The notes under the pieces are model-generated. The model searched no databases and had not been told where the DNA came from. It saw only the letters and a list, made by a program, of their open reading frames with translations. Source: Diplonema japonicum (taxonomy: Eukaryota > Protista > Euglenozoa: Diplonemea). From it: a stretch of DNA of 64,000 nucleotides. Positions 2,229-64,000 of the stretch are shown one piece after another (position 1 is the stretch's first letter; each line of letters begins with the position of its first letter). The translations under genes and the position numbers were made by a program. The stretch spans positions 534,441 to 598,440 of the forward strand of contig OZ025680.1 in NCBI GenBank assembly GCA_964019335.1, in the 5' to 3' direction.

Positions 2229-2426
2229 AGTTAAAGAACTTGAGGTTACCACCTCCAGGGGGGTGGGGTAAAGCTTCAACTGAGGGTAATTTAAAAGGGG
2301 AGAAAAATAGGAATATTTTTATGCTTCTGCGGTTCGGTCTGTCCATGTATATCTTCTTCCTTTGTCGACATGCTATTATCTCACAATCTACAGGGTGGAA
2401 CACCCACGTCCACGAAGAAAGAAAAA

Positions 2427-3536: not shown

Positions 3537-3993
3537 ACCAGCAGCCGTAGTTGGTATGGTCGCTCCGCCCACTCCGCCTTCACTACCTGTACAGATGTGA
3601 TGCCTACAGCGCGTGGCCAAGAGAACAGTGAACAGTGTTCTACGAAAGAGGTTTTTTTTCAAGGTGGTGGGGGGGGGGGGGGGGGGGTAACATGGAGATA
3701 TAAGGAAGTACATCAGATATGTACCCGAGTTGGTGCTTGGTTGCCTAGGGCATCTGTAGCGATAAAGTGGCCTCCTTATCTCCTCGTTTTCTTTTGGGGC
3801 GGTGGGGTAAGACGATTATTAGTGTGTCGCATTTGACAAAAAAAAGAAGTTACCCATCCATCCCCCTCCCCTTCATTCTGTTATTATATCTTCACATACC
3901 CCGCCTTCCTACTCACCTCGTTGCTAACCGTGTCTGACATTGGAACACCTCGTTCGCAACCACCACGACACCAACAGTACACCAACAGACAAC

Positions 3994-5250: not shown

Positions 5251-5344
5251 GTCTAGCAAGCAATTATTCGTTTTTAGAGATTTGCATATTTTGGGTTTTT
5301 AATAAGAACCTTTGTTCTCAAAGTGCACTGTCTATCACAGGGAT

Positions 5345-7567
5345 ATGTCTTCTGACGACCAGCATGGCACAGGGGCCGCTGATGTTGAGTACAAGATCCA
5401 AGAATATGAAGGCGTGAAGCAGAGATGTGCAGAGCTGGAGAACACAATGAAAGAGTTCTGCACTTCTGCCAGCTGGGTGACGGAGATGAGAGAATGGGTC
5501 GGGCAGAGCTTGGAGAAAATACAAGTGATGAGGGAAGAGTGTCAAGAGTCGTTGGAGAAGATGGAGAAGGCGGTGGCTGTACCGCAAGGTACTTACTGGT
5601 CCACGAAGATGCTCTCAAGGCACTGCTCTCTGATGCTTGATGAGAAAAGACTGATAAGAAAGGACGGGAACGTTCTGCCCAAGAACAACCCTTCGTGGGC
5701 AGACGTCATCAAGCTCACATCAACACTCACGAATCTTAAGACGAAAGGCTTCGTCACAAAGAAGCAGGCTGTGTTCATTGAAGCTGTCGAGGAGCACCTG
5801 AAGGGGGTGTTCTTCGAGGGGAAGGAACTTCGTAGGATCACTGAAGCCCTTGCGACAAAGCTGTCCGAGGAAATCGAACAGCAGACCATCACCGCTGACC
5901 TCACTAAGCACGAGCACGTCATTTCCGATCTTGTCCCCGACCTTGAGAACTGCGAGAACCTCTTAGAGGCCGCCCTGCTGAACGGGGACATGGCCCTCGC
6001 GGAGGAGATCTCATACAATCAGATCGCACTCCACGAGAGACTGCTGAGAATCGTGCAAGAGCAGTACCCCATCATCAGAAAGCGCCAGGAAGACTCACGA
6101 GAGTTCAAGCGGAGAAGGCGCTGGGCGATCTTCAGGATGGCAAACAGGGACGTCGCCTCTGTCGTAGAATTGAAGTACAGACAGATCGAGGCCTGTGAGG
6201 ATGACATTCAGAAGATCAAGACGCAAGTTGCTAACTACTCGCAGGACGACCTCGGGCAGCGCAGGCGGTACGACTTGGACAAGGCAGAGTCTGATAAGTT
6301 CCTTTCTGAGAACGCTGCACATCAGGATTCTTTGTGGAAGAAAGTCAGTGACCTGTGCACAGAGCTGCAATCCACGCAGAAGGAGCTAGCCGACCTTGTG
6401 GAACAACGTAAAAAGGAGTTGAATCGCCGATCGGTGCTCAGGGAGAAGGAAGAGGGGAGGCGCTCTGGCCACCTGGCATTCTTGAACGTGGCGGAGGTGT
6501 ACCTGGGAAACCTCAACGCGACAATAGAGAACTCTGAGAAGGCAAAGGACATCTGCAAGGCGATAAACGATTTCATTCTAGACGGCTGTGACTCGGTGGC
6601 GCTCAAGTTCGACCGCACAGAGTCTGTGCTCGCAGAGATGGCCACTCGTGTGAACAGGCAATACTTGAAGCAGTTCACCGACTACTACTTAGCCGTGGGG
6701 CGCCTGCACCATAGAAAACACAAAAAGCGTGCTTTGCTCGAGGCCTCTATATCCGAGCATCACGTCCGGCTGGAGCTGGCTCTGGACAGCATCGATCCTC
6801 TAGCCAAGAAGCACGCAGAGGCAAAGGCTTCGGCATTGGAGCAAAGAAAGTCACTGGATCACGAGATGGAAGCGCTGCACACGAAGATGGTGTCGTCTAG
6901 CAAAGCGTTCGAGGAGGTGGCAGACTCTTTGCGAAGCCTCAACATACCCTTCGTGCACCCGGAGGTGATCCTGCAGAAGTCTTGCGACGACCGCAACGAG
7001 AAGATCCTCGACTACAGAGACCTCGTCAACACAACAGAAGCGAAGCAGGAGCAGCTACTAGAGGAAGAGGCAACTCAGCTTTCGAAAGAGAAAGAAGCTC
7101 ACACCATAAAGGTGCGCGCAGCGCAGAGTCAGAAGGCAGCTGCGAAAGGGCTGCACCCTATACCCCCCATGGGGGCTGGGTCCAACAGGGCTCTGGCTAA
7201 GTACCACGCGGCGTCCTTCTCGAGATACAAAAATCTGTGCGACACGGTGCTGACGCAGGATGAGGTAGAGGCTGCAGAGGTAGAGCAACAAGCGGCTGCA
7301 AGCACCGAGGCAGCAACCATGGTCACGGCCCCCCCTCACCCGACACACAAACCCAATCTGCCGGAACGCATCGAAGGGCGTGTTGTGATGGCAGTATACC
7401 CCTTCCGCGCCACCTCCAGCGACGAACTGACCTTCAACAAAGGTGAGCGGATAGTCGTAATCAACGAAGGAACAGAAGACGGATGGCACTACGGCATCTG
7501 CAATCAAAGGACTGGTCTCTATCCATCCAACTACGTCACGCTGGCACCTGAAGAGCTGGAGTACTGA
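5345..7567 (+). CDS. Paraflagellar rod family protein with C-terminal SH3 domain (PFR5/PFR6-like)
   Basis: Long coiled coil with PFR-like segments (LELALDSIDPLAKKHAEAK, IPFVHPE). SH3 motifs AVYPF...ELTFNKGE...DGW...GLYPSNYV. Confidence 0.8.
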   Translation: MSSDDQHGTGAADVEYKIQEYEGVKQRCAELENTMKEFCTSASWVTEMREWVGQSLEKIQVMREECQESLEKMEKAVAVPQGTYWSTKMLSRHCSLMLDEKRLIRKDGNVLPKNNPSWADVIKLTSTLTNLKTKGFVTKKQAVFIEAVEEHLKGVFFEGKELRRITEALATKLSEEIEQQTITADLTKHEHVISDLVPDLENCENLLEAALLNGDMALAEEISYNQIALHERLLRIVQEQYPIIRKRQEDSREFKRRRRWAIFRMANRDVASVVELKYRQIEACEDDIQKIKTQVANYSQDDLGQRRRYDLDKAESDKFLSENAAHQDSLWKKVSDLCTELQSTQKELADLVEQRKKELNRRSVLREKEEGRRSGHLAFLNVAEVYLGNLNATIENSEKAKDICKAINDFILDGCDSVALKFDRTESVLAEMATRVNRQYLKQFTDYYLAVGRLHHRKHKKRALLEASISEHHVRLELALDSIDPLAKKHAEAKASALEQRKSLDHEMEALHTKMVSSSKAFEEVADSLRSLNIPFVHPEVILQKSCDDRNEKILDYRDLVNTTEAKQEQLLEEEATQLSKEKEAHTIKVRAAQSQKAAAKGLHPIPPMGAGSNRALAKYHAASFSRYKNLCDTVLTQDEVEAAEVEQQAAASTEAATMVTAPPHPTHKPNLPERIEGRVVMAVYPFRATSSDELTFNKGERIVVINEGTEDGWHYGICNQRTGLYPSNYVTLAPEELEY

Positions 7568-8476: not shown

Positions 8477-8625
8477 CAATAGAAACCAAACATTTAGAAG
8501 AATTTACGTCCCGCATTTTCATTGGACATCTGACGGCTGTCTCAACAGGGAGGCCGTATTTCTTTTTTTCTCCTTTTTTTTCCCCTTTGCACGAGTAACA
8601 GTAGGATTTGATCTTTTTTATTTAT

Positions 8626-9569
8626 CCCCTAAACGCCCGGAGCCTATCTACGGTACCCCCCCATTTTCGTTGTTGCTTTAAATACTCAAAAAGGCATATG
8701 CAAAACGTGTTTTTTACCCTTGCATGCTACCCCAGCTGGAAAAAAATCTCACAAGTTGCTTTTTTCATCCCACAGCCCCAAAAAGTCTCACTGGGGCACC
8801 AAATAGGGCTGAATGCTGCCCTTTTTAGCCCATAACTCCACGGACCCCCCACGACAAGACCCCCAAAATCGGGACATAAAAAGTACACCTTCAATCCCCC
8901 TCTTACACACATAGTTAAGTGTTCTCATCTGAATCTGGCACCTGGAATTGAAAATTTTAGTACCGTTTACCCTTTCCTTGCACCTTCCTATGGTTGCATG
9001 CTGCCCTTTTTTTGAGTATTAGCGATTACCTTGATGCCCACCGAGTTGCTTTTTCGTGGTGCCATGACTTTTATTGTTGTCGGGATAACACAACAGACAA
9101 CCACTTGCCAGGGGTCCGCACAGTCCTACACCGGTTGACAATGATGTAGTACCGCGTGTGTAAAAAAAAAAGATTAAAAACACCCTCCTCATTGGCCGCT
9201 TCACCTAGAGGTGTCCTAAGCCCACCTTTTTACGGAAATGATATGTTTCGGGCCTTTGGGAGTATTTCTCCCACCCAAGCATCGTTTCCGGCCCCTCTTT
9301 GACCGCCTCATCGTCTTTTTCTTCTTTTTCTGACCAGTCGGGGGAGACTCACGTTTTCGCTGCTATTTTGACCATCTGATTTCATTTTAAGCCAACCCTG
9401 CCGGTTTCAATTAAAACAAAACTTTTAACGCAAAATGTAGTTCCGAGACAAAATAAACCGCGCAACAACGCCATATTTTGAAGTCCAGGGGCCGTGTTCA
9501 AAAAAAAGTACTTAGCGAAAAAGCAAATTTTGAAATAAGGACAAAAACGTCCGCGCGGGCGTTTAGGGG
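8626..9569. mobile_element. Non-autonomous piggyBac-like element (944 bp) with TTAT target duplication
   Basis: Perfect 14-bp TIR CCCCTAAACGCCCG (8626-8639) / CGGGCGTTTAGGGG (9556-9569), TTAT on both sides. Minus-strand remnant GVGLCGPLASGCLLCY resembles the piggyBac Cys-rich C-terminus. Confidence 0.75.
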
Positions 9570-54167: not shown

Positions 54168-55146
54168 ACCCCCCCCCTCCCATAGGGCGGCCCTCTAGCG
54201 GGGGGCTTGTCCTGTACTTTGAGTTTTTTTTCTTACGCTCCATATTCGCTAAGTGACCCGCCCTATGTCCCAAAGGAAAAGCTAAGAGCTGGGGAGCGAC
54301 GACCTGGTGCGGGACACGGTCAAGGTGCGCAACAAGGAGAACTGGGCCCCGGTGAACAGTGCGGTGGCTTGGCTGCAGCTCGAGTCGGGGAGGGCACGGG
54401 TGGGGCCCATACCCCACAAGAAGAGGTCCAAAGGCTCGCTGGCCAGATAGGCCAGCGGGGGTGTGGGGGGCTGTTCTCCCCCCCCCCCGCCATAGGAAGA
54501 TGTGAAACTTTTTTTTTTTTTTTCTGAGAAAAAAAAAAAGGGAAAAATAAAAGAATAGGGAACAGGTGCTACAACGGCCAGGCTAGATAGAACCACTTAG
54601 ATTTTTTTTTTTTTTCCTTTTTTTTTTTTTCTTTTTGTTTTTCCTTTTTTTTTTTTTTTTTTTATTTTTCTGTTTTTCTTTTTCTTTTTCTTTTTGAAGT
54701 GGAACCATCTCGGTCGACGTTTTTTTTTTTTTTTTTTTTTTTTTTTCTTTTTTCTTTTGTGGTGATGTGTTTTTCCTGTTTTTGATTTTCTTCTTCCCCC
54801 GCTCTATGCTTTTTCGCATGGACATTGGCCACTCTGCCCCTTTCCCCTTTTTTGATTCTCCCTCTTTCCCCCTCCTAAATTTTACCCCCTGCCCCACTCA
54901 TTCCTCCCTAGTATGTTTTTGAATTTGCCTCTTCTTCTTTTAAGCCTTTTTTGAGATTTTTATTTTTGAATTTTTATCATTTGGAGTTGCTTCTTCTTCT
55001 TCCCCTCTCCCTCCCATAAAGAAAAAGAGAAACCCATGCCTTCCTCCCAGGTTGGAACTTGATTGTCTGTTTTGGAATATTTTTATTTTCTCTTAAGATT
55101 TATCGTGCCTTGTGTGTCTTTTGAAGAAAAAAAAAAAAAAAAAACA

Positions 55147-55192
55147 TTCTCAAGTCCCCCTTTTTATTTATTTTCTCAAGTCCCCCTTTTTA
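55147..55192. repeat. 20-bp direct repeat TTCTCAAGTCCCCCTTTTTA x2 just upstream of the SL exon
   Basis: Identical copies at 55147-55166 and 55173-55192. Confidence 0.9.
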
Positions 55193-55197
55193 AAAAA

Positions 55198-55236
55198 AAC
55201 CAACGATTCTAAAGCTACAGTTTCTGTACTTTATTG
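55198..55236 (+). ncRNA. Complete 39-nt spliced-leader (mini-exon) sequence, diplonemid type
   Basis: AACCAACGATTCTAAAGCTACAGTTTCTGTACTTTATTG: 39 nt with the conserved kinetoplastid/diplonemid 3' half CAGTTTCTGTACTTTATTG. Confidence 0.93.
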
Positions 55237-55377
55237 GTCGTCTGTGTTTTTGTTGGTGCCTGCTGCGTCCGCTCGGTGTCCGTTCGTCGTCGTCTGGGGG
55301 GGTTGTTTCGGCCCGGCCCGCCTGCCGTTTAGCAAAGGATCCCCTCCCCCCTCAACACAAAAAAAAAAAAAATAAAA

Positions 55378-58300
55378 ATGGACCCTAGACGAAACGTCGT
55401 CGGAGACCGCCGCCCGCAGGAGGAACGCCTACGAGAGACGCCGACCAAGCCGACCACCCGACCAGACCGAAATCTGGCCGGGCAGTATGACCCCTCCCCT
55501 CCCCTTAGATCCCCTCTAGATGTCGTCAAAAATAATAAAAAACATAAAAAAATAGAACCACCCGCAGCCAGCGCGCCCGCTCCCGATTCCGCAGCCGCCA
55601 CCGCCACCCGCCTGAAGACTGAGAGGGGGGAAAAAAAGAAAAAAGGAGGGTGGGTGCTCACGGGAGGGGACCACCCCCCGGGCTTAAGAACAGGCCCAGC
55701 CCCCACCCACCCAGAGACCTTGCTCTCGGGGAGGTGGGAGACCATTTCGGGGAACAAAGGGAGGGAAACCCTCCAATTTGGTTTCAGGTGGGTGGGTGCC
55801 CGTGCCAAAGTGCGCCGCACCACCCCGATCCCAGAGGGGGCCAGGGGTTGGGTGGCGGAGGTGGCCACCGCAGCGGGGCTGGGGATCACCCCAGACCAGG
55901 TGCTCGTAAATCGATACGAGCCTGGGTGTGGAATCGCCCACCACACCGACGACGTGAGGTTGGGACCAGTGGTCCTCATCCTCTCGTACGGCGCAGAGAC
56001 CACGATGGTCCTGAAGAAGGGGTCCAGGGTATCGAAGTACCTGGTGCCTCCCTTCACCTGGGCCATTCTGGAGGGTGAGGCCCGCTACGAATGGACCCAC
56101 CACATCCCCGAAGGGTGTTCTTCGGGCTCCAGGGTGTCGATCACCCTGCGGACGGTTGGCTGCCCCGTGCCCCTCCCCTCCCCCTCTGTGTCCTCTGTGG
56201 AGGAAATAGAAAAAAAAAAAACTGTGTTTGTGGGGAGAAGGAAAGAGAGTGCGAAGGAGGTGTCCCCGAGAGAGGGAGGCGCCCCTTCCCCCCCTTCCTC
56301 CGCTTCTTCTTGTTCTTCTTTCTCTTGTTTATCTGTCCCCCCTCTTGTAAATTCCCCCCTTGTAAACCCCCCCATTGTAGATTCCCCCCCCTTTGTTCCC
56401 TCCCAGGAGGAGGATAAGAAAAAAAAAAAAGGGAAGGGTGCACTCCCGAGAGAGGGTAGCGCCCCTTCCTCTGCTTCTTCTATTTATGGTTTATCTGTCC
56501 CCCCTCTTGTAAATCCCCCCCTTGCAAACCCCCCCCAAGTGGATTCCCCCCCCTTTGTTTCCTCCCAGAAGGAGGATAAGAAGAAAAAAGAGAAGGGTGC
56601 TCTCCCTAGAGAGGTTAGCGCCCCTTCGGCCCCCCCATTGTCACCCCCCCTTTACACCCGGATCCGAATGGGTCCGGGACTTTTTTTGAGGGTGGAAAAT
56701 AAACAAAAAAACACACCCACACTCACTAACAGGAGGGGGGTCCTGGCCCCCGTTTCCACCACCCTCCAGGGGGTGGTGGGGGCGGTGGCCCAGGAGGAAA
56801 GATGGAAGCCGGAGCGCGCCCCGCAGGGGAGGAAAGGAGGGGGAGTACCCTGGTTGGCCCCGGGACCCCGGAAGACGAGGCAGACGGTGACGAAGGGCCG
56901 GAGGAGGAGACACCGTAGCGAGGCCACCCTCCAAAGGCGCCGCGAGGAGAGGGCCCAGGCCAGGGAGAAGGCTAGGGAAATCGCTGACAGGGAACGGAGG
57001 AGGCTGCACCGCCAGAGAAGGGTCGAGAAGAGGAGGGAAAGGGAAGCCCGCAAGAAGAAGGGGTGCGGTCCCGCCCCTCCAGCTGTTGCAGCCCGGCTCA
57101 TCGGGATAGCGGAAGCGGAGGAGAGGGCTGCGATGGCCAGGAGGGCCATCAGGTCGAGGGCCGGGAAACACCTTGCGAGGAAGAGGTGGGTGGCCAGGAG
57201 ACGTTGGGGGCCCTATACCAGGGTGGTCTATCGGAGCCCCGTGCCCCACCTCCCCTTTGAAGCCTCCTCGCTCAAAGGCGGAGCAACGCTTTCCCAACCC
57301 CCACCCCCGCCTCCGCCCCCAGGCACAGCCGGAGGCCCCCCCGCCACCAGTAGGAGCACGGCCGGGGCTTCCCGAAGGACCGACGGAGTGTGGGAGTGCC
57401 TGCTGTGTGAGAAGGGTAGGAAAGAGCACTCGTCGAAGGCGGGCTTGCAGTACCACCTGTCGAAGACCCACGCCGGAGAGCTCACGCCAGAGAACGCGAA
57501 GGCGATGGGTTTCGCGATCTGCGGAGGGTGCAGCGTGCTGTTCACGGCGGGGAACAAGGAGCGGTGCGTGAATTGCCGGCCCAAGCCCGAGAAGGAGCCC
57601 TCCCGCCTCGTCCGTGGGATATCGGGCACGTCTGTCACCAGGGAGTCGATCCTGCACGAGGTGGGTGCCAAGGAGGAGGATGCTGGGGGCGGAGGGGATT
57701 GCTTGTTCCGCTCTCTGGCTGTGGTGCTGCTGGGGGAGAAGGAACGACACGGAGAGGTGAGGAGTCGGGTGGTCAGCCACATAAGGGACAACAGGGGCAG
57801 GTTCGAGAGCTTTGTGGATCCGATCGGTTTTGAGGCCTACATCGACTACATGGCAAAGCAAGGGGAGTGGGGGGACCACCTTTGTCTGCAGGCGGCGGTG
57901 GAGGTCTGGCAAAAGACGGTCGTGGTCGTGACCGGGGGTGACGCCCAGGTCTTGAAGCTCGGGGAGGCAAGGGAACCGGAGGATACGGTGGTGCTTGGCT
58001 TCACGGGATCCCACTACAGGCCTGTGTTGGTCTCGGAGGGCGGAAAGTCCACCCTGGTGGATTGGGCGGTGGAGGCGAGGCTAGCCCCCTCGGGGACCAG
58101 GCCCGCCATCCTGGACCTCGCCCACCTCCTGATGCCGGAGTCCTCCATCAGGCCCAACGGACACCACATGAAAGATGCCCCACGGCTGGACAGCAAGGTC
58201 AGGAGTTTCCAGTGCCCGGTGAGGGGGTGCGAGAGGTCGTCCCACATGGGAGGCCCGGCGATCTTGGGGTGGGAACTGCTGAAGTCCCACTTGAACGACC

Positions 58301-61300
58301 ACCTGCTGGACGAGGAGGTACTCCCGCAGGAGCTGAAGAAGTTTGGCCTCAAGACCTGCGTGTGTGGGTCGGTGGTGGGCGAACGGGAGGCGGCTCACGT
58401 CAGGTGCATCGCCAGGTACAGCGCTCCTGGGGGTCCCGTGGATGTGAAGGCGGCCCCTAGCCGGGACGCACTTCCTTCTCTGGAGGAGGTGGCCACCCGG
58501 AAAGTGGGCCTCATGAAGCACATCCCCGTCCCGCTCCAAGGGTTGTGGAGTCTGGCGCTAAAGACGGCACTGGTGAGGGTGAAGCAGGAGAACTCCTACC
58601 TGTCGTGGGTGCTGCTCCTGATGCTTCCGAAGGCTTGCCTGGGCAGACGCAGGGGTGGAAAGGCACGTCGGAAGTCCGGGGAGAGCAGCGCCAAGCAGAA
58701 GTTGGAGGCCTGGATCAGAGGGGAGTACCAGCAGGTGTGGAACGGAGTCCCCCTATCGGAGAAGAGAGTCTCGAAGGATCCAGACGACGAATCCAGGCTG
58801 AAGAGAGGGGAGACGCTGTGCAGGGATGGGCGCTTCTCCAGAGCCAACGCAGCGCTAACTGCGGGAGGGTTGGCGGAGGACTCCACCGAGACCTTCGAGA
58901 AGCTCCTGGGCCTCCACCCTGAGGCATCGGTTGACCCCTCGGGGTTAGAACTGAATCCGGCTGACTCCTTCGAGGACGTCACGGCCGTCGACGTTCTGAG
59001 CATGGTCCGGGACTTTGACAAGGGGAAAGCGGCTGGGCCGACTGGGTTGAGCGCCCAACACCTGAAGGACGGGGTGGACGGCGTGGTGACGGAAGTAGGG
59101 GCCCTGGCGGCTCTCACCGAGGTGTGCAATATCATGGCCAGAGGTCAGACTCCGGCTGAGGTGGCACCGGTGCTACTAGGGGCGAGCTTGATTCCGCTGC
59201 GGAAACCGGACAGGGGAGTCCGTCCGATCGCCGTAGGAGAGAGCCTGAGACGACTTGTAGGGAAGGCAATCCTTGACAAGGAAGGGGCGGAAGTGGCCAA
59301 GTCCTACCTGAGGAAGGGGGGCCAGATCGGGGTGGCGGTCCCCGCGGGGATGGAGGCGGCTGTCCACGCGACAAGGCAGTACGTGGAGAAGGCGAAACAG
59401 GACGACGTGTCCCGAGTGGCGATCAAGATAGACTACGCAAACGCCTTCAACACAATCAGCAGGTACGAGATGCTAAAGGAGGCGTGCGCGAAGGTTCCCA
59501 AGGGGTACAAGTGGGCCGAATCTTGCTACAGACACCCATCCAAGCTGTTCCACGAGGGGACGGAGCTACTCTCGAGGGAGGGGGTCCAGCAGGGCGACCC
59601 GGTGGGTCCGTTGCTGTTCTCCCTCGCGCTGCAGCCAGTACTGGAGAAGATAAGGGCGGATACAAGTCTGGACCTCCAGTTCTTCTACCTCGATGACGGG
59701 TTCCTGGCCGGAGAGAGGGGACAGGTGGAGAAGGCCTACCGCATCGTGGTAGAGGAGTCGGCGAAGCGAGGCCTGAAGGTGAAGCCGCAGAAGTGCGAGT
59801 TGATCTGGGTGTCTGGTGAGAAGCCGACCGACCCAGAAGAGTGGGGCTTCTCCGGTTTCTCCAAGGAGAAAATGAGCTCGGATGGGAACTTCGAGCTCCT
59901 GGGGACCCCCATAGGGGACGCGGAGTACACGAAGGCTTTCTTGGCAAAGAAACTCGAGGCCCTGGGCAAGACCTTCGAGATGCAGAAGAAGATGAGGACC
60001 CAGTCGGGCTACGCCTTGGTGAAGAACTGCAGCTCGTACAGCAAGATGGTCCACCTCATGCGCACGGTACCGCACACGCAGCTAGCGGGCCCCTTGACGG
60101 AATTCGACGGCCTGGTGAAGGGGGCGATGGAGCACCTTCTTGCCCGGGAGCTCGGGGAGAGGGAGTGGAGCCAGGCGAAGCTTGCGACGAGGAGGGGAGG
60201 GATGGGCCTTCGCAGCTGCAGCGAACACGCCCTAGTGGCGAACATGGCCTCGCTGGCGGCGACCCAGGAGCTGGCGTCGGAGATCCTGGGGGGGTACGAC
60301 TGGGACGCTTCACTGGCGGGTGGCTGGGAGTGGGGGGTCGAGTGGTTCAACGGCCACCTCGCAGCCGACGATCCTGACAGGCTCTCCGTGGACCTGCTGC
60401 GAAACACCCCGAGGCTGTACCCTCAGAGGAAGATGTCGCAGATCCTCGAGGAGAAGTCCTGGGGTGCGCTGTTCGGGAGCTCCCCGGGTGGTAGGGACAA
60501 GGCCAGGTTGAACTCGCTGAAGGTTCACAAAGCAGGGGCTTGGCTGACGGCGATCACGGGCTTGAATAACGAACTAAAGAACGATGAGTTCAGGACGCTG
60601 ACCAGCTGGCTCCTTGGCATCGCAGTCGGGTCCGAGGGGAAGTGCCCGATGTGCGGTGAGGACAACGACGCCCTAGGCGACCATGCCATGGTTTGCAAGA
60701 GAGGTGCGGTCATGACGAAGAGGCACGACAGGGTGAGGGACATGTTGGTGAAGCACTGCTACAGCGGCGGGTTGCAAGCGGTGAAGGAGCAACAAGGCCT
60801 CCTGGGTGACGGGAGAAAGCCTGCTGACGTTTACCTCCCGATGGGGGTGGAAGGCGAGGGCCCTCTGGCCATCGACGTGACGGTGGTCCACCCGTGCGCG
60901 AGCGCCCACCTGGCGGCGGCAATGGCGGTTCCGGGGGCGGCTGCGGAGAAACAGGCGGAGTCGAAGCGGGCGAAGTACGCGAGCGACTGCGAGAGAGCCC
61001 GGATACGGTTCACCCCCTGTGCTCTGGAGACGTTTGGCGGGTTCGGGACCGACGCCAGGAGGGTGCTGAAGAGGATCGCGGCGGAGGTGGCGAAGAAGAG
61101 GCAGCGGGACGCGACGGAGGTCTATAGGACCATGACAGAGGAACTGAGCGTAGCCCTCATGAGAGAGGTGGCAGTGGAGACGAGGAGGAGGCACCCGATC
61201 AAAGAGACACAAGCACCGCCCGACCCACCCCCGGCCCCAGACATCCCCCCCGATGGCCCAGGAGACGAGGAAGCCCAGGCAGCGGGCGCCCCCCCACCCT

Positions 61301-64000
61301 CGACGGAGGACGCGTCAGGCACGACAAAAACCGAATCAGCCGACATGCCCGCTGGAGAGGAGGAAGTGTGCACGACGCAGGATGGCCCCAGCGCGATGGA
61401 GGAGGACCCGGCAGAGGACATGCCAGAGGAGCAGGCGGCGTTGCAGACAGGCCCTCTCTCATTGCAGGGGGAGGACTTCGGCTTGATGGAGGTGGAAAGC
61501 GAGGACGGGCTGGAGGGCGGTGCTCCGCAGGCGGACATCCCCGCCGCCCCCCCGGTCGTCGGAGGGACGGACTTGGCCCCCGCGGGGGAGGGGGGAACCC
61601 CTGACGCGACGGAGGTGAGGGAGCCCTGGGGGGCAGTGCCGCTACCAGACATCTCCAGCCCCGACGCGATGGAGGAGGATACGGCAGGGAGCTCGCTCGC
61701 AGAAGGGTGGGTTCCGCAGGCAGGCCCCGCTGCCCCGCGGGTGGACATCTCAGGTTCTAAAGAAAACGAAACAGCCGACTTGTCCATGGGGGAGGGAAGT
61801 CCTCAGGAGGAGGAGCCCGGCTTGATGGAGGAGGACACGGAAGAGAGCGGGGATGGGCAGGGCGGAGGGACGTCGCTGGGATACACCTCCACCCCGGCGG
61901 AGGAGGTGGGCCCGACCGACATGTCCGTGGAGGAGGAGGAGGAGAAGAGTGATTCGATAGAGGGTGGGGAACCCATGGAGGGGACGTCTCAGTCGGACGC
62001 CTCCGACTCCTCCTCGGAGGGCAACACTGGCACAGAAAACACCATCCAAGCCGTATTGCCTGAAGGAATGGAGGAGGAGGACGCGCAGGGAACGGACCGG
62101 ATGGAGGTTGAGGGGGGCCTGACTCCGCCGCAGGCATCAGAGGGGAACACTGGCACAGAAAACACCATCCAAGCCGTATTGCCCGAAGGAATGGAGGAGG
62201 AGGGCTCGCAGGGGACGGTCCAGACGGAGGTTGAGGGGGGCCTAACCCCGCCACAGGCATCAGAGGGGGATGAGCCTATGGGGCCACTCCTGCTCGAGGG
62301 ACGGGCTGAGGTAAGTGGAGAGCCGAGCAACCACCAGTTTCCCCTCTCTCCGTCCCCCTCGGGAAGGGAGGACGACCAGATGTCGTGGCAGGGGCCGCAG
62401 GAAGGGGAGGGGGGGCCCTCACCGTCATCTTCGGTGGAGGAAGTCCTCTCGTCCGCCCCAGAGTCCAGCAGCGAAGGCCCCGGGGTCGGAGAAGGGGACG
62501 CAGAGTTGCAGAGCGCCGGAGGGGAGGGAGGTTCGGAGTCACCCGGGTCGGCCAGCCCGATGAGGGAGGACGAAGGGAGCCCCGATCTGGAAGCGGCAGA
62601 AGCCGGAGGCCCGCCAGCGGCGGTGAGCCAGGAGGTGGAGCGGACCGGGCTGGGCGCGTTCTCTAGGGAGCAGATCATGGCGATCCTGGAGGCGGATGTC
62701 TTCTCTCCTGTACCCGCGGGAGAAAGCGGCCTGGGGACGACACAACCCTCACAGGGAGCGGCGGTGCTAACCCCAAGGGCCTCCCAGTCGGTGCTCGGAG
62801 GAGGGTGCGACTCCCCCATTGTGGCGGCGGTGTTGGAAGGGGCTGCCCGAGGCCCCCCTTCGTCGGAGGGGGACAGGGCAAGGCTTGGGGGAGACCGTGA
62901 GTCAGGCTCTCCGGAGGCCAGGAGCACGGGGAACACACCGTCCGTGACGCTTGTGGGAGCCATCGGGGAAAGCCTGGTGAGGAAGAGGGTCCCGTCCAAC
63001 GAGGCCCTGTCCGCCCAGAGGGATCCCAAGGTACAGAGGCACCCAGCGTTGCTGGACGTCAGGGGGCCTGCGGTCCGCCCCTGGTTCCCAGTCCAACTAG
63101 AGTCAGACGAAGTTTGCGTGGCGCGGGTTCTCTTCGAGGCGGACGGGGAGGAGGAGTCCCCCATCCAGTCGGAAGGCGTCGAACCCCCTATCCAGGCGGA
63201 GGGTGGTGAGTCCCATGTCCGGGAGCTCCCCGCCCAGGAGGAGGAGGCTGGGTCTCCCACCCAGGCGGAGGTGGGTGAGTCCCCCACTCAGACGGAGGGC
63301 AGTGGATCCAGCATCCAGGTGGAGGATAGCGAATCCCCTACTCAGTCGGAGGGTGATGAGTCCCACATCCAGGAGGAAGGAGGGGAGTCCCCTGCCCAGG
63401 CGGAAGGTGAAGCTAATGAGCCCCCCATCCAGACGGGAGCGGCGGTGGAGGACGGGACCGCGCCCGAGCCCCTCGAGATTGATTCGCCGGAGGTCAGTGG
63501 GAACAGGGGTCTGGCGAGGAAGAGGGTGCCCTCGAATGAGGCTCAGTCCGCCCAGCGGACCCCAAAAGTGAAGAAGGGTCGCGGCCAGCTGGACGTAAGA
63601 GAATCGAGCCTGGCCGCTGGCATGCGCGTGCTGTTCGGAGCGGTTCCGCCCCCTTCCCTGACCCCCTTGGCCGTGGGTAGCAGGCCGCCGCAGGAGGAAG
63701 GCGAAACGGCGCAATCTCCCATTCCGGGGGCGAGCGGTGCAGGGCTCTACTCTCCAGAGGCGAGGTTCCCGGAGGCGCCCGTGGTGTCCATGGCCGCGGA
63801 CCTGTGCGAGTCGGACGGGATGGAGGCACATTCGGCCCCCTCCGGTGTGGACAGAGAGCCTTCGCCCGCTCGTCCGTCGCAGTCTCCCGTGCTGGGGGCT
63901 GAAGGCGGGGGGCGCCTCTCTCCGGAGGTCAGTACCCCAGAAACCTCCAACCCCGATGTCCGGGTAGAGGGCGGGGAAAAGGTCGCCAGAAAAAGGGTAC
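55378..64000 (+). CDS. Retrotransposon polyprotein (>=2874 aa, 3'-incomplete): AlkB-like dioxygenase - zinc fingers - OTU protease - RT - CCHC/RLE - acidic tail
   Basis: Manual translation from ATG 55378; no stop found. AlkB NRYEPGCGIAHHTD...RYEWTH...RVSITLR; C2H2 CLLC...HLSKTH; OTU GDCLFRSL...WGD...SHY; RT RPIAVGE, IDYANAFN, GVQQGDP, YLDD (59686-59697); CPMC...H...C, RHD, KPADV, AIDVTV, KRAKY, ETFGG. Confidence 0.93.
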   Translation, partial: MDPRRNVVGDRRPQEERLRETPTKPTTRPDRNLAGQYDPSPPLRSPLDVVKNNKKHKKIEPPAASAPAPDSAAATATRLKTERGEKKKKGGWVLTGGDHPPGLRTGPAPTHPETLLSGRWETISGNKGRETLQFGFRWVGARAKVRRTTPIPEGARGWVAEVATAAGLGITPDQVLVNRYEPGCGIAHHTDDVRLGPVVLILSYGAETTMVLKKGSRVSKYLVPPFTWAILEGEARYEWTHHIPEGCSSGSRVSITLRTVGCPVPLPSPSVSSVEEIEKKKTVFVGRRKESAKEVSPREGGAPSPPSSASSCSSFSCLSVPPLVNSPLVNPPIVDSPPFVPSQEEDKKKKKGKGALPREGSAPSSASSIYGLSVPPLVNPPLANPPQVDSPPFVSSQKEDKKKKEKGALPREVSAPSAPPLSPPLYTRIRMGPGLFLRVENKQKNTPTLTNRRGVLAPVSTTLQGVVGAVAQEERWKPERAPQGRKGGGVPWLAPGPRKTRQTVTKGRRRRHRSEATLQRRREERAQAREKAREIADRERRRLHRQRRVEKRREREARKKKGCGPAPPAVAARLIGIAEAEERAAMARRAIRSRAGKHLARKRWVARRRWGPYTRVVYRSPVPHLPFEASSLKGGATLSQPPPPPPPPGTAGGPPATSRSTAGASRRTDGVWECLLCEKGRKEHSSKAGLQYHLSKTHAGELTPENAKAMGFAICGGCSVLFTAGNKERCVNCRPKPEKEPSRLVRGISGTSVTRESILHEVGAKEEDAGGGGDCLFRSLAVVLLGEKERHGEVRSRVVSHIRDNRGRFESFVDPIGFEAYIDYMAKQGEWGDHLCLQAAVEVWQKTVVVVTGGDAQVLKLGEAREPEDTVVLGFTGSHYRPVLVSEGGKSTLVDWAVEARLAPSGTRPAILDLAHLLMPESSIRPNGHHMKDAPRLDSKVRSFQCPVRGCERSSHMGGPAILGWELLKSHLNDHLLDEEVLPQELKKFGLKTCVCGSVVGEREAAHVRCIARYSAPGGPVDVKAAPSRDALPSLEEVATRKVGLMKHIPVPLQGLWSLALKTALVRVKQENSYLSWVLLLMLPKACLGRRRGGKARRKSGESSAKQKLEAWIRGEYQQVWNGVPLSEKRVSKDPDDESRLKRGETLCRDGRFSRANAALTAGGLAEDSTETFEKLLGLHPEASVDPSGLELNPADSFEDVTAVDVLSMVRDFDKGKAAGPTGLSAQHLKDGVDGVVTEVGALAALTEVCNIMARGQTPAEVAPVLLGASLIPLRKPDRGVRPIAVGESLRRLVGKAILDKEGAEVAKSYLRKGGQIGVAVPAGMEAAVHATRQYVEKAKQDDVSRVAIKIDYANAFNTISRYEMLKEACAKVPKGYKWAESCYRHPSKLFHEGTELLSREGVQQGDPVGPLLFSLALQPVLEKIRADTSLDLQFFYLDDGFLAGERGQVEKAYRIVVEESAKRGLKVKPQKCELIWVSGEKPTDPEEWGFSGFSKEKMSSDGNFELLGTPIGDAEYTKAFLAKKLEALGKTFEMQKKMRTQSGYALVKNCSSYSKMVHLMRTVPHTQLAGPLTEFDGLVKGAMEHLLARELGEREWSQAKLATRRGGMGLRSCSEHALVANMASLAATQELASEILGGYDWDASLAGGWEWGVEWFNGHLAADDPDRLSVDLLRNTPRLYPQRKMSQILEEKSWGALFGSSPGGRDKARLNSLKVHKAGAWLTAITGLNNELKNDEFRTLTSWLLGIAVGSEGKCPMCGEDNDALGDHAMVCKRGAVMTKRHDRVRDMLVKHCYSGGLQAVKEQQGLLGDGRKPADVYLPMGVEGEGPLAIDVTVVHPCASAHLAAAMAVPGAAAEKQAESKRAKYASDCERARIRFTPCALETFGGFGTDARRVLKRIAAEVAKKRQRDATEVYRTMTEELSVALMREVAVETRRRHPIKETQAPPDPPPAPDIPPDGPGDEEAQAAGAPPPSTEDASGTTKTESADMPAGEEEVCTTQDGPSAMEEDPAEDMPEEQAALQTGPLSLQGEDFGLMEVESEDGLEGGAPQADIPAAPPVVGGTDLAPAGEGGTPDATEVREPWGAVPLPDISSPDAMEEDTAGSSLAEGWVPQAGPAAPRVDISGSKENETADLSMGEGSPQEEEPGLMEEDTEESGDGQGGGTSLGYTSTPAEEVGPTDMSVEEEEEKSDSIEGGEPMEGTSQSDASDSSSEGNTGTENTIQAVLPEGMEEEDAQGTDRMEVEGGLTPPQASEGNTGTENTIQAVLPEGMEEEGSQGTVQTEVEGGLTPPQASEGDEPMGPLLLEGRAEVSGEPSNHQFPLSPSPSGREDDQMSWQGPQEGEGGPSPSSSVEEVLSSAPESSSEGPGVGEGDAELQSAGGEGGSESPGSASPMREDEGSPDLEAAEAGGPPAAVSQEVERTGLGAFSREQIMAILEADVFSPVPAGESGLGTTQPSQGAAVLTPRASQSVLGGGCDSPIVAAVLEGAARGPPSSEGDRARLGGDRESGSPEARSTGNTPSVTLVGAIGESLVRKRVPSNEALSAQRDPKVQRHPALLDVRGPAVRPWFPVQLESDEVCVARVLFEADGEEESPIQSEGVEPPIQAEGGESHVRELPAQEEEAGSPTQAEVGESPTQTEGSGSSIQVEDSESPTQSEGDESHIQEEGGESPAQAEGEANEPPIQTGAAVEDGTAPEPLEIDSPEVSGNRGLARKRVPSNEAQSAQRTPKVKKGRGQLDVRESSLAAGMRVLFGAVPPPSLTPLAVGSRPPQEEGETAQSPIPGASGAGLYSPEARFPEAPVVSMAADLCESDGMEAHSAPSGVDREPSPARPSQSPVLGAEGGGRLSPEVSTPETSNPDVRVEGGEKVARKRV
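56266..56630 (+). repeat. In-frame tandem repeat (~160-180 bp unit, ~2.2 copies) in the retroelement ORF
   Basis: PREG.APS...LSVPPLVN.PL.NPP.VDSPPFV.SQ.EDKKK recurs at ~56266 and ~56446, with a partial copy at ~56604. Confidence 0.85.
62018..62270 (+). repeat. 123-bp in-frame tandem duplication in the acidic tail
   Basis: EGNTGTENTIQAVLPEGMEEE...EVEGGLTPPQAS occurs twice. Confidence 0.9.
63150..63440 (+). repeat. Degenerate 30-bp minisatellite encoding (E-S-P-x-Q-x-E-G-x-x)n
   Basis: About 10 units such as gagtcccccatccagtcggaaggc and gagtcccccactcagacggagggc. Confidence 0.8.

Follow-up and report, generated by a model that had tools for sequence, protein, structure and literature searches.

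A non-LTR retrotransposon with AlkB and OTU domains and an R2-type enzyme core at contig ends of Diplonema japonicum

In the present work, we analyzed a 64,000-nucleotide stretch of Diplonema japonicum DNA (the window) and found that it ends in a non-LTR retrotransposon with a restriction-like endonuclease (RLE) and an R2-type enzyme core, whose single giant polyprotein also carries an AlkB-type dioxygenase and an OTU cysteine protease. Long terminal repeats are absent, the 3′ end is A-rich, and both truncated copies and multiple insertion junctions occur. The fusion of AlkB, OTU, reverse transcriptase (RT), and RLE is real and old, and the copy in the window is probably a recently active, full-length representative of a 10.7-kb element with the life cycle proposed below. 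Beyond the original prediction, our data add the subtelomeric location of the element, its outward orientation, its arrangement in chains, a conserved LxGG motif, and homologues among public Diplonema papillatum proteins. The element and its immediate flank comprise the following features:

54284 to 55197, plus strand: 5′-truncated copy of a sister family (family 2) that retains its final 55 codons, 3′ UTR, and A-run and opens the terminal retroelement chain on the proximal side
55198 to 55236, plus strand: complete 39-nt spliced-leader (SL) exon with which the element begins, matching exactly the exon of the genuine SL RNA genes (contig C15)
55237 to 55377, plus strand: 5′ UTR, 100% identical to that of family 2
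55378 to 64000, plus strand: polyprotein ORF, 2,874 codons in the window and then the contig end; intact copies add 40 codons, a 3′ UTR of ∼1.5 kb, and A9
55753 to 56151 (aa 126 to 258), plus strand: AlkB-type 2OG/Fe(II) dioxygenase (Pfam PF13532, 2OG-FeII_Oxy_2, E = 8.9e-10)
56313 to 56627, plus strand: Pro/Ser/Lys-rich tandem repeat of variable copy number in the linker (TRF, period 162 × 2)
56785 to 57237, plus strand: Arg/Lys-rich, helix-prone segment, a candidate nucleic-acid-binding region by composition and translation
57271 to 57285 (aa 632 to 636), plus strand: L-K-G-G/A, a ubiquitin-C-terminus-like candidate OTU cleavage site (slash) at a conserved position
57397 to 57576, plus strand: C2H2-like and C4 zinc-finger region (motifs in the translation; kept in D. 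papillatum and family 2)
57680 to 58020 (Pfam aa 771 to 856), plus strand: OTU cysteine protease/deubiquitinase domain (PF02338, E = 5.6e-10)
58213 to 58407, plus strand: second zinc-finger region, Cx4C...Hx4H and then CCHC-like (translation; aligns with family 2 and D. papillatum)
58825 to 60642, plus strand: RT with N-terminal extension, fingers/palm (YLDD), thumb, and linker (Pfam RVT_1, E = 1.1e-18)
60643 to 61077, plus strand: CCHC knuckle and restriction-like PD-(D/E)xK endonuclease (residue conservation, R2 superposition)
61165 to 64000, plus strand: acidic Glu/Gly/Pro/Ser-rich C-terminal tail with internal repeats (composition, motifs, TRF repeats, frame openness)

The original prediction had proposed one giant ORF encoding AlkB, OTU, RT, and RLE, and Pfam, sequence, and fold searches bear this out, with each domain at the predicted position, the zinc-finger motifs on both sides of OTU visible in the translation, and the 2OG-Fe(II) and OTU profiles both matching above their Pfam cut-offs. 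As had also been claimed, the ORF is missing from the ORF track although its 2,874 codons are free of stops; it escaped the list because it extends past the window edge, which is the end of the contig (C33, position 598440). The five other frames of positions 55378 to 64000 contain 28 to 97 stops each. Even the low-complexity final third of the ORF has none, compared to 7 to 23 in the other frames, and none of 2,000 shuffles remained open. Two antisense ORFs on the minus strand (56641 to 58014 and 61989 to 63287) were discarded as side effects of the high G+C content of the sense frame. In intact array copies, the ORF encodes 3,005 aa within a unit of 10,659 bp, thus reaching 40 codons beyond the truncation in the window. 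AlkB, OTU, and RVT_1 are the only Pfam domains of the polyprotein, with the methyltransferase, helicase, and RNA-dependent RNA polymerase (RdRp) of a flexivirus-type replicase being absent. The order is AlkB, Arg-rich linker, OTU flanked by zinc fingers, RT, CCHC and endonuclease, and acidic tail. The region of aa 263 to 670 is rich in proline (14%), arginine (13%), and lysine (7.6%); here the window copy has one linker repeat unit fewer than the array copies, a 237-nt difference visible as overlapping matches (query 1 to 1146 and 910 to 6123). Three RKRVP-type basic motifs lie in the tail of ∼1,000 aa.

The AlkB domain scores 39.5 bits in the window copy and 50.6 bits in family 2, compared to a PF13532 cut-off of 31.2. 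Its HxD, distal His, and RxSxTxR motifs align to AlkB and to ALKBH8, the top PDB sequence match (E = 4.4e-8), and HxD...H and RxSxTxR are invariant across both families, D. papillatum, and 32 further homologues. The best 50 Foldseek matches of its structural model (pLDDT 93.3) are all AlkB-family chains, with E values down to 2.4e-11, and include ALKBH6, -8, -5, -3, -2, and -7, AlkB, Ofd2, and NMAD-1. A dN/dS of 0.245 at a dS of 0.88 (versus family 2) indicates that purifying selection acts on the domain, to which host AlkB genes are just 27 to 35% identical. PDB sequence and fold searches place it nearest to ALKBH6, ALKBH8, and Ofd2. These three are not classical m1A/m3C demethylases, and this proximity would count against a template-demethylase role of the element's AlkB. 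AlkB and OTU were originally seen as a counter-defense or template-repair kit, a function that they may have.

The OTU domain (40.3 bits; PF02338 cut-off, 23.3) aligns with OTUD3 (6.9e-7) and OTUD5 in the PDB through its catalytic motifs, the Cys in GGDCLFR and the His in GSHY, both of which are conserved among relatives. Where a third (acidic or amide) catalytic residue would be expected, two positions after the catalytic His, family 1 has an arginine (H-Y-R) and not an acidic residue, whereas family 2, the D. papillatum relative P0170, and P0001 and P0002 read H-Y-E. Upstream of the module formed by OTU and its zinc fingers, an (L/M)xGG motif is aligned in D. papillatum P0320 and P0328, in P0001, P0002, and P0003, and in family 2, where it reads LQGG/G. 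LxGG is a short motif that occurs five times in the window ORF; the candidate site is positionally conserved in six lineages, and in P0320 (2,635 aa) it is the single LxGG. This conservation suggests that the polyprotein may cleave itself.

For the RT, RVT_1 (aa 1275 to 1485) scores 68.2 bits against a cut-off of 29.6, R2 is the top PDB sequence match (1.9e-8), and the model of the RT core (pLDDT 93.3, pTM 0.91) matches the folds of R2 and LINE-1 ORF2p chains with Z scores of 22 to 25. YLDD is present, and its residues D290 and D291 are invariant in 54 homologues, as are C607, C610, C624, H634, E655, D684, and K714 of the CCHC knuckle and endonuclease, with H620 nearly so. The endonuclease residues superpose on those of R2; R2 chains align over model residues 1 to 751, whereas LINE-1 ends at ∼601, such that residues 602 to 751 are matched by R2 proteins only. 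The CRE-like placement given in the original prediction is plausible in view of the endonuclease motif and of the SLACS names of the D. papillatum relatives, but the element is not inserted in SL RNA genes. The SLACS/CRE consensus is C-x(1-3)-C-x(7-8)-H-x(3-4)-C-x(9-10)-RHD/N...E...R/KPD...D/E (PMC12857005), and the element reads CPMC-x9-H-x3-C-x8-RHD-x19-E-x9-KPAD-x15-D, with three spacers off by one; since the motif is common to other RLE clades, this spacing does not discriminate between them. The nearest RT relatives among the best 120 matches are elements without a family name, including some from dinoflagellates, a tardigrade, and a moth, and the clusters found in the ESM Atlas are labeled just "hypothetical protein, RVT_1."

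Three families exist in the genome, ∼40% identical in their core; family 2 (40% core identity) has the same domain order, and family 3 carries AlkB and RT in one frame. Families that elsewhere share ∼40 to 70% identity have an identical 5′ UTR and identical first 58 codons. At least 10 near-full copies are 97 to 100% identical, most with open ORFs, which supports the original view of a recently active element in the form "recently active or maintained." Some form a tandem array with an exact 10,659-bp period, each unit ending in A9 directly before the next; there are at least eight distinct 5′ junctions, including junctions to different truncated units, and units truncated at the 5′ end occur alongside units truncated at the 3′ end. 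The family-2 unit preceding the window copy is 99.3% identical to nt 8479 to 9360 of a full family-2 copy (L037, C16), with 100% protein identity over the final 55 residues, and adjoins unique DNA like an ordinary insertion. Because the same remnant lies upstream of family-1 copies on six further contigs (C79, C93, C45, C69, C24, and C47), part of the spread between chromosome ends may reflect subtelomeric recombination instead of transposition. In D. papillatum, GenBank proteins automatically named "SLACS" show the same domain order, with P0320 and P0321 carrying AlkB, OTU, and RT; at least seven AlkB-bearing proteins of this species are encoded by these retrotransposons or have the AlkB domain in common with them. 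A relative, P0002/P0013, contains a second deubiquitinase type, UCH. The element is also found in independent public sequencing runs, including as a 6.4-kb contig. In run X7, the SL is covered ∼15,000 times more deeply than the body of the element and, as expected for RNA, is fused to hundreds of different sequences; contigs tile 25 of 30 bins. Transcription of the element is therefore likely, with X7 being suggestive, as the type of this run is not on record.

The copies concentrate at contig ends. At least 114 AlkB matches and 76 RT matches lie almost all within ∼10 kb of contig ends and point outward (∼42:1). Within 12 kb of contig starts, the minus strand has ∼42 AlkB matches and the plus strand 1; at the five ends of contigs with known length, all are on the plus strand, RT matches follow the same pattern, and a few exceptions are internal or inverted (C12, C8, C81, and C52). 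Nearly every contig end carries units of the three families, arranged as head-to-tail chains and arrays. Within chains, upstream units break off at arbitrary 3′ positions, with a precise join to SL nt 1 to 3 of the unit that follows, and 3′ parts are not in excess over 5′ parts, as the match counts show. The distal, eroded (3′-truncated) copies are capped by the non-canonical repeat (GCAAACCC)n, with 2 to 5 nt of microhomology at the junction; the window copy and the array units adjoin other units and not octamers. TTAGGG telomere repeats were not found in the assembly. Many contigs terminate in octamer arrays alone, indicating that a separate repeat-adding activity probably exists.

The SL exon heads all 23 intact 5′ UTR copies, with nt 1 and 2 differing among copies and nt 3 to 39 constant. 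Immediately downstream of the exon, the SL RNA gene reads GTACCCAATC and the element reads GTCGTCTGTG; no insertion interrupts the genuine SL genes on C15, whose intron is unlike the element 5′ UTR. As the head consists of the 39-nt exon alone, with no other part of the SL gene, it was likely copied from a trans-spliced mRNA and not acquired by insertion into SL genes. Two copies (L009 and L013) carry the SL plus a partial second SL beginning after an internal ACAG, as if the encoded SL had been re-spliced, and in one copy the SL is joined 83 nt further downstream. Such derivatives imply passage through RNA at least twice. A search of the genome for a master copy lacking the SL but having an AG acceptor found none. 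An "anti-SL hairpin" predicted for the SL/5′ UTR was discarded, its stability being no better than that of shuffles (z = −1.47), and Rfam returned only sub-threshold chance matches to microRNAs on the SL-gene stretch.

On the basis of these data, we propose that the element is transcribed within an outward-reading terminal transcription unit and that its RNA would mature through SL trans-splicing and polyadenylation. At the conserved (L/M)xGG, the OTU domain would cleave the polyprotein of which it is part, freeing a putative RNA-binding protein, made of AlkB and the Arg-rich segment, from the ZnF-OTU-ZnF-RT-RLE enzyme; OTU may additionally deubiquitinate. AlkB could oxidatively strip base methyl groups off the template RNA, candidates being the cap-proximal methylations of the SL, m1A, and m3C, and their removal would allow the RT to reach the very 5′ end of the RNA. 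The endonuclease would nick terminal or subtelomeric DNA, and target-primed reverse transcription would add units in a single orientation, its cDNA product running colinear with the octamer's G-rich strand. Several observations count against this proposal, among them the affinities of AlkB, the Arg of the family-1 OTU, the shortness of LxGG, the possible contribution of subtelomeric recombination, and the lack of octamers beside the window copy. How an RNA beginning exactly at SL nt 1 is regenerated from an SL-headed DNA copy is unexplained, and the expected re-spliced forms are rare (2 of ∼20 junctions). A more far-reaching version, which we regard as quite unlikely in its combined form, holds that chromosome ends are built by a retroelement system without described counterpart, in which a trans-spliced, SL-capped AlkB-OTU-RT-RLE RNA is primed by the G-rich octamer strand to yield outward chains and a terminal repeat of inverted polarity, and in which AlkB erases base methylations of the hypermodified SL cap for the RT to copy the leader's first nucleotides. 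If true, this would be the first transposon-encoded epitranscriptomic eraser in the service of its own replication.

Other readings concern the targets of the accessory domains and the way in which units reach the ends. AlkB might hydroxylate or demethylate chromatin proteins or insertion-site DNA, like Ofd2 or NMAD-1, while OTU acts purely as a deubiquitinase that shields the RNP or disarms ubiquitin-dependent restriction. The nearest structures, which include the histone-directed enzyme Ofd2 as well as ALKBH6, ALKBH8, and NMAD-1, favor such host targets, as do the similarity of OTU to the cellular deubiquitinases OTUD3, OTUD5, and OTUD1, the added UCH domain of P0002/P0013, and the OTU genes of Helentrons, which are thought to modify host signaling (PMC4067079). 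We nevertheless consider this somewhat unlikely, given that the (L/M)xGG just upstream of the OTU module fits self-cleavage, that AlkB is joined to an Arg-rich segment such as nucleic-acid binders typically have, and that the AlkB-then-OTU pairing of plant viruses is located in the replicase. Alternatively, the elements and the octamer could form a domesticated or mutualistic telomere system that builds or buffers ends like Drosophila HeT-A/TART, with units added by octamer-primed RT and template jumping from the RNA 5′ end and not by endonuclease insertion. Single-orientation units on nearly every contig end, the unusual octamer in place of TTAGGG, the arbitrary 3′ cuts with precise joins to the next SL, the microhomologies between octamer and element body, and the lack of a 3′-part excess (76 RT versus at least 114 AlkB matches) would all fit. 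However, the invariance of the endonuclease catalytic residues over families and species argues for their use, the orientation is opposite to that in Drosophila, MoTeR, and FoTeR, the contigs ending in octamers alone make a separate repeat-adding activity probable, and the 5′-truncated unit at 54284 is joined to unique DNA. Taken together, this reading appears unlikely.

Improbable as well is that the copies are immobile, one old retro-copy having been spread and homogenized by unequal crossing-over, break-induced replication, and gene conversion, with frames kept open by conversion or a host function. The exact array period (10,659 bp), the family-2 remnant shared upstream on at least six contigs, the 97 to 100% identity among copies, and the identical 5′ UTR and first 58 codons across otherwise divergent families could be explained in this way, but the eight or more different 5′ junctions, some to different truncated units, the re-spliced derivatives with their implied two or more RNA rounds, the coexistence of 5′- and 3′-truncated units, the purifying selection on AlkB, and the tiling of the ORF by contigs of a probable RNA library all argue for mobility. 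Very improbable is a classical CRE/SLACS-type insertion in SL RNA genes that left the 5′ SL as a remnant of the target. Although it is favored by the contact between SL and element, by an endonuclease motif in line with the SLACS/CRE consensus, and by the automatic naming of the D. papillatum relatives as SLACS, this reading is contradicted by the intact SL genes on C15, whose intron differs from the element 5′ UTR right after the exon, and by the flanks of the copies: the whole exon, and not nt 1 to 11, precedes the element, the remainder of the SL gene follows none of the assembled 3′ ends, and what lies upstream belongs to other units, being either a poly(A) tail or a truncated 3′ UTR. Finally, an assembly artifact, or a single event in which a retrotransposon was fused to AlkB and OTU genes of the host, has nothing but the contig-end position in its favor and a negligible probability. 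A one-off fusion, a misassembly, and a lack of these domains in other copies are refuted by the number of copies, the three families, the occurrence in a second species, and the independent sequencing runs, and host AlkB genes are only 27 to 35% identical.

The original prediction knew of no description of this architecture, and we likewise found no paper describing it in the searched literature on AlkB or OTU in retrotransposons and on diplonemid transposons, although public D. papillatum proteins do show it. Neither a retrotransposon encoding an AlkB oxygenase nor a non-LTR element with OTU was found in the searchable literature; in the Chlamydomonas genome paper, OTU was not found as a whole word, earlier matches being word starts only. 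In the searchable literature, the AlkB-then-OTU pairing ahead of a polymerase is otherwise known only from plant RNA virus replicases, which suggests that a reverse-transcribing element reached the same accessory kit independently. Such a second system would make the debated role of viral AlkB, template repair versus erasure of RNA marks, testable in the element. Here, three euglenozoan oddities are joined, namely, trans-splicing, polycistronic terminal transcription, and a non-canonical chromosome end, and DNA copies carry the leader with errors at its cap-proximal nucleotides only. As at least seven D. papillatum AlkB proteins are element related, the "AlkB-type genes" read as host regulators in the genome paper of this species may be largely element derived, which would correct that published inference.

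Compared to known systems, the element resembles the RLE elements R2, CRE, NeSL, Utopia, R4, and HERO, in which one ORF likewise encodes, after zinc fingers at the N terminus, the RT, a linker, CCHC, and PD-(D/E)xK endonuclease. Its whole 751-residue core superposes on cryo-EM structures of R2 (Z scores of 22 to 23 over ∼680 residues), and R2-type elements share its A-rich 3′ end, lack of LTRs, and truncated copies. In contrast to the R2 type, its ORF is three times longer and adds AlkB, the Arg-rich linker, OTU, and the acidic tail of ∼1,000 aa; unlike R2, it is SL headed and lies outside the rDNA, with a sequence identity to R2 of ∼15 to 17%. With CRE1/CRE2, SLACS, and CZAR it shares a euglenozoan host, an association with the SL, and a close endonuclease motif pattern, and the SwissProt-type name that best fits the D. 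papillatum relatives is SLACS. Yet, CRE1/CRE2, SLACS, and CZAR sit within SL RNA genes, where they split the SL exon, whereas ours carries the whole exon at its own 5′ end and is subtelomeric, outside SL genes; no description of AlkB or OTU in CRE1/CRE2, SLACS, or CZAR was found in the searched literature. The RLE polyprotein of NeSL-1/Utopia opens with a Ulp1-type cysteine protease for ubiquitin-like modifiers, and NeSL targets SL genes (PMC4640811). NeSL-1/Utopia thus differ from the element in having Ulp1 and not OTU, in lacking AlkB, and in targeting SL1 or U2 genes and not chromosome ends.

Confinement to chromosome ends, fixed orientation, head-to-tail arrays, and variable internal tandem repeats are likewise found in MoTeR/FoTeR, TRAS/SART, HeT-A/TART, and Giardia GilM/GilT. 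MoTeR and FoTeR encode RT and RLE and are grouped with SLACS/CRE (PMC12857005), and, as in the element, their sense strand runs in line with the C-rich strand of the repeat. In contrast to these telomere-associated elements, the element points toward the terminus with its 3′ and not its 5′ end, an octamer with an inward-running G-rich strand forms the terminal repeat, and the SL head, AlkB, and OTU are added. As the original prediction had noted, AlkB and OTU are paired as in plant flexivirus replicases: in those of the Betaflexiviridae type, AlkB and then OTU precede the polymerase within a single replication polyprotein, an order mirrored in the element (PMC544882), which differs in having no methyltransferase, helicase, or RdRp. 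Given that its AlkB is closer to eukaryotic ALKBH6/ALKBH8 than a shared origin predicts, the likeness to flexiviruses is convergent and not homologous. Lastly, Helentrons and Ginger encode an OTU protease in which the catalytic residues are all present (PMC4067079, PMC2836005); in contrast to the element, these are DNA transposons, in which OTU is usually a separate ORF and accompanied by neither RT nor AlkB.

Translation bore out the giant stop-free frame on which the original prediction was built: window 55378-64000 holds 2874 codons in frame 1 with 0 stops, against 28 to 97 in the other five frames. Its low-complexity last third has 0 stops versus 7 to 23 in the other frames, and 0/2000 shuffles of it stayed open. 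The ORF was missing from the ORF list because it runs past the window end, the last base of the window being the last base of contig C33 (598440 bases). Contig C24 carries the complete element, tandemly arrayed with a unit of 10659 bp; compared with this unit, the window copy lacks the final 40 codons and one 79-codon linker repeat unit.

Unit of the C24 array, 5' to 3'
39-nt spliced leader (SL)
~140-nt 5' UTR
3005-codon ORF
~1.5-kb 3' UTR
A9

Window 1-54000 contains 23 ORFs longer than 250 aa, of which 19 are on the plus strand and face the contig end; its long intergenic tracts are T-rich and A-rich. A polycistronic transcription unit running into the terminal element chain has this layout.

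All domains originally proposed (AlkB dioxygenase, zinc fingers [ZnF], OTU protease, reverse transcriptase [RT], and CCHC knuckle with restriction-like endonuclease [RLE]) are present in one polyprotein; the zinc-finger motifs are seen in the translation, and the other domains were recovered by Pfam, sequence, and structure comparison.

Pfam domains of the polyprotein, all above the curated cut-off
aa 126-258, 2OG-FeII_Oxy_2
aa 771-856, OTU
aa 1275-1485, RVT_1

The AlkB domain aligns best with ALKBH8, followed by Schizosaccharomyces pombe Ofd2, ALKBH3, ALKBH6, and Escherichia coli AlkB; its HxD, distal His, and RxSxTxR motifs are in register with these proteins and invariant across 34 aligned homologues, and the top 50 structure matches of its model (pLDDT 93.3) are exclusively AlkB-family chains. 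The OTU domain has a Cys motif, GDCLFR, and a His motif, GSHY, and aligns with OTUD3, OTUD5, and OTUD1. For the RT-endonuclease core (aa 1150-1900, 751 residues) we found 262 relatives at E ≤1e-5, the best of them 30-37% identical over the full length. An alignment of 54 of the 262 shows no variation at the RT aspartates, at the three CCHC-knuckle Cys residues, or at H634, E655, D684, and K714, and almost none at the His of the knuckle, H620; the spacing of the endonuclease motifs is at most 1 residue off the SLACS/CRE consensus (quoted in PMC12857005). The AlphaFold model of the core (pLDDT 93.3, pTM 0.91) is nearest to R2 retrotransposon proteins (Foldseek, E 3.8e-21), whose chains cover model residues 1-751, including the CCHC/endonuclease end, whereas the alignment to LINE-1 ORF2p stops at about residue 601.

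This architecture is not a one-off fusion. At least 10 copies, near full length and 97-100% identical, are present in the 62.5-Mb genome (132 contigs); most have an open frame, and a few have frameshifts or stops. An AlkB-domain protein search of the genome gave 114 matches in three identity classes (97-100%, ~71%, and ~51%), several of them in open frames of 2,700-3,005 residues, and an RT-domain search gave 76 matches in corresponding classes (100%, ~62%, and ~56%); the host-type AlkB genes, 27-35% identical to the element's AlkB, are chromosome-internal. A full copy of the sister family 2 (L037 on C16) has a 2804-residue ORF with AlkB, OTU, and RT in the same order as in the window element (family 1), to which it is 40% identical across the ZnF-OTU-RT-endonuclease part, and the AlkB domains of the two families show a dN/dS of 0.245 at a dS of 0.88. 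The element was also found in independent public sequencing runs, one contig reaching 6.4 kb. Misassembly or chance fusion is excluded by the many copies, the families, the second species (Diplonema papillatum, below), the signature of selection, and the independent runs; the architecture is kept under selection.

Families 1 and 2 have a 5' UTR in common at 100% identity, and their first 58 codons contain one nonsynonymous difference (5' UTR and codons together, window 55198-55551 and L037:52-404), the remaining protein being ~40-70% identical. This near-identical 5' module points to either recent exchange, by recombination or template switching, or very strong constraint. At L030:1501-2690 (C69), a family-1 copy is cut after its AlkB and linker portion, leaving a 358-aa ORF; about eight irregular GGTAAGGGTGCAAAAA-type repeats follow, and then a family-2 copy that begins within its 5' UTR, without SL. 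At L028 (C43), matching window 55147-55192, the 26-nt end of a family-2 3' UTR stands in at least 7 tandem repeats before the next SL head.

The element opens with the euglenozoan spliced leader, a 39-nt sequence ending in ...CAGTTTCTGTACTTTATTG. On the minus strand of C15 (778700-779700), ~1 kb from a contig end, lie two genuine SL RNA genes 352 bp apart; no large SL gene array was seen. Their exon is the same as the element's head; after it, the gene reads GTACCCAATC..., followed by an Sm-like site, AATTTCTTG, and a T-run, and the element reads GTCGTCTGTG..., so that the exon alone is common to both. Sharing restricted to the exon is what is expected of a cDNA of a trans-spliced mRNA; insertion into the SL gene as in CRE/SLACS, which would not give this pattern, is disfavored. 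All 23 copies with an intact 5' UTR in the genome are SL headed, with no SL-less master copy among them. In two copies (L009 and L013), the first SL is succeeded by a partial one beginning directly after the internal ACAG; this fits resplicing of an SL-encoding transcript and implies at least two passages through RNA. In one copy, the SL is joined 83 nt deeper into the 5' UTR. We compared 20 different junction contexts, 18 from retro-copies and 2 from the genuine SL genes. Across them, SL nucleotides 3-39 are constant, save for one copy without the first four nucleotides, and nucleotides 1-2 read AA, TA, CA, CC, or GG; such a pattern is expected if the RT either misreads a modified cap-proximal end or adds bases there. 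In 59 SL copies, the next bases are GTA, GTG, or GTT; most of these copies are dispersed and chromosome-internal, and they may head other retroposon families.

The units occupy chromosome ends and share an orientation. Of the SL core, 214 occurrences were counted genome-wide; those near contig starts lie on the minus strand and those near contig ends on the plus strand. Within 12 kb of a contig start, the minus strand carries ~42 AlkB matches and the plus strand 1; at the ends of the five contigs of known length, all are on the plus strand, and the RT matches show the same strand pattern. Hence, units point outward with the 5' end proximal. Exceptions are few (C12, C8, C81, and C52); on C12, family-1 copies near both ends face inward (C12:344-4039, plus; C12:809761-811915, minus). 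Four tandem TTAGGG units are absent from the whole assembly. Contig ends consist instead of an octamer repeat, whose three-unit (24-nt) pattern has ~5,900 matches genome-wide and whose G-rich strand, GGGTTTGC, runs 5' to 3' inward from the contig end, so that the strand ending 3' at the terminus is (GCAAACCC)n.

Examples of octamer ends
C1:1-384
C4:1-248
C3:999806-999965
Genome stretches L002, L012, L014, and L021

Variant octamer units (GCAAACCCC, CACAAACCC, and GCAACC) occur in blocks. Four copies (C37, C47, C90, and C3) are cut at differing internal positions and capped by (GCAAACCC)n, which continues as far as the contig terminus; the junctions show microhomologies of 2-5 nt. Distal to the octamer block at L021:3426-3500 (C3) lies a T-run and then, as reverse complement, the 3' end of a different unit; this unit faces inward, and its poly(A) abuts octamers. 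Upstream of each SL head lies another unit's A-run or truncated 3' UTR, making head-to-tail chains; window 54284-55197 comprises the last 55 codons and 3' UTR of a family-2 element (99.3% identity), so the window order is unique DNA, a 5'-truncated family-2 unit, and the full-length family-1 unit. Unlike in ordinary LINE families, 5' parts are no rarer than 3' parts (the 114 AlkB against the 76 RT matches), which fits erosion from the distal 3' side.

Public sequencing runs, whose kinds were judged from their behavior, are suggestive of transcription. Run X1, with contigs totaling 61 Mb, behaves like whole-genome DNA; its loose ends lead to family 2, to the 3' end of the element itself, and to the true SL gene. 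In run X7, the SL bin is ~15,000 times as deep as the element body and the SL is joined to hundreds of differing sequences, a signature of mRNA; of the 30 bins of the element's first 6 kb, 25 are covered by low-depth X7 contigs of 99% identity. One contig of this RNA-like run joins window 58678 to 58828 and leaves out 149 nt of the ORF (58679-58827), a length not divisible by three; it could be a deletion variant, an assembly artifact, or a spliced form.

Viral proteases of the deubiquitinase type, OTU among them, cleave after ubiquitin-like ends. A candidate site resembling the ubiquitin C terminus, LKGG/A (slash, candidate cut), lies at aa 632-636, and an aligned (L/M)xGG, 125-145 residues ahead of the OTU cysteine and directly before the first zinc finger, is present in the D. 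papillatum proteins P0320 and P0328, in the divergent relatives P0001, P0002, and P0003, and in family 2; it is the sole LxGG of the 2635-residue P0320. A cut here would yield two products: a ZnF-OTU-ZnF-RT-endonuclease enzyme and, from the N terminus, a protein made up of AlkB and a segment rich in Pro, Arg, and Lys.

We consider the following four-step life cycle, taken as a whole, probable. The element would be transcribed with the outward terminal transcription unit, then trans-spliced and polyadenylated. The OTU domain would cut the polyprotein at (L/M)xGG, a self-cleavage that we predict from sequence with evenly balanced confidence. The AlkB protein might then bind the RNA and strip base methyl groups that block reverse transcription; action on template RNA is a tentative proposal, and the nearest AlkB relatives, ALKBH8, ALKBH6, and Ofd2, count against a demethylase. 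Among the cap 4 modifications of trypanosomes are base methylations that disturb pairing. This hypermethylated cap 4 occupies the first four nucleotides of SL RNA (PMC2879531), as known from trypanosomes, the host here being a diplonemid. Finally, the R2-type enzyme would carry out target-primed reverse transcription at terminal DNA, yielding cDNA colinear with the G-rich octamer strand.

Outside this genome, an exhaustive profile search returned no protein strongly matching the whole N-terminal part. Its best match, P0170 (KAJ9446222.1) of D. papillatum, combines AlkB and OTU in one chain and is automatically named an ALKBH8-like tRNA methyltransferase; its cluster mates KAJ9442719.1 and KAJ9464152.1, with AlkB, OTU, and RT, are automatically named "Retrotransposable element SLACS 132 kDa protein, partial." Homologues are already present, unrecognized, among public D. 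papillatum proteins. Six of these (P0170, P0179, P0184, P0320, P0321, and P0328) have one AlkB domain sequence in common and fall into three 90% clusters, and two of the six carry the tRNA methyltransferase name. The D. papillatum genome paper (PMC10161547) listed RTs of SLACS type apart from "a dozen" genes of AlkB type, which it read as host regulators, and made no link between the two; much of that dozen may come from retrotransposons. P0002 and P0013, RT-RLE core relatives at 33% identity from another organism (ENA assemblies), have OTU ahead of RT and UCH deubiquitinase and RNase H1 N-terminal domains after it, but lack AlkB; it seems that this RT lineage has repeatedly taken up proteases of the ubiquitin system as accessories.

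In the open literature (subscription journals and Repbase being outside the scope), we found no description of AlkB in a retrotransposon and no detailed description of diplonemid transposons. The enzyme core is that of RLE-bearing non-LTR elements. The original interpretation is supported in part. A CRE-like placement is plausible and fits the host group, the SL link, the motif spacing, and the automatic SLACS names of relatives; the insertion into SL genes that defines CRE is absent here. The N-terminal Ulp1 protease of NeSL and Utopia (PMC4640811) is a functional parallel to the OTU domain, and among DNA transposons, Helentrons and Ginger are known to carry OTU genes. MoTeR and FoTeR, with RT and RLE, are telomere confined in a fixed orientation, 5' end toward the terminus (PMC12857005), and, measured against the C-rich repeat strand, they are oriented like the present element. 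The predicted likeness to flexivirus replicases also held, since these have the same layout of AlkB then OTU upstream of the polymerase (PMC544882); the element has no viral hallmark domain, and the likeness is therefore one of convergence. In sum, the element is a retrotransposon of R2/CRE type that combines an AlkB-OTU accessory module, an SL head, and a subtelomeric niche.
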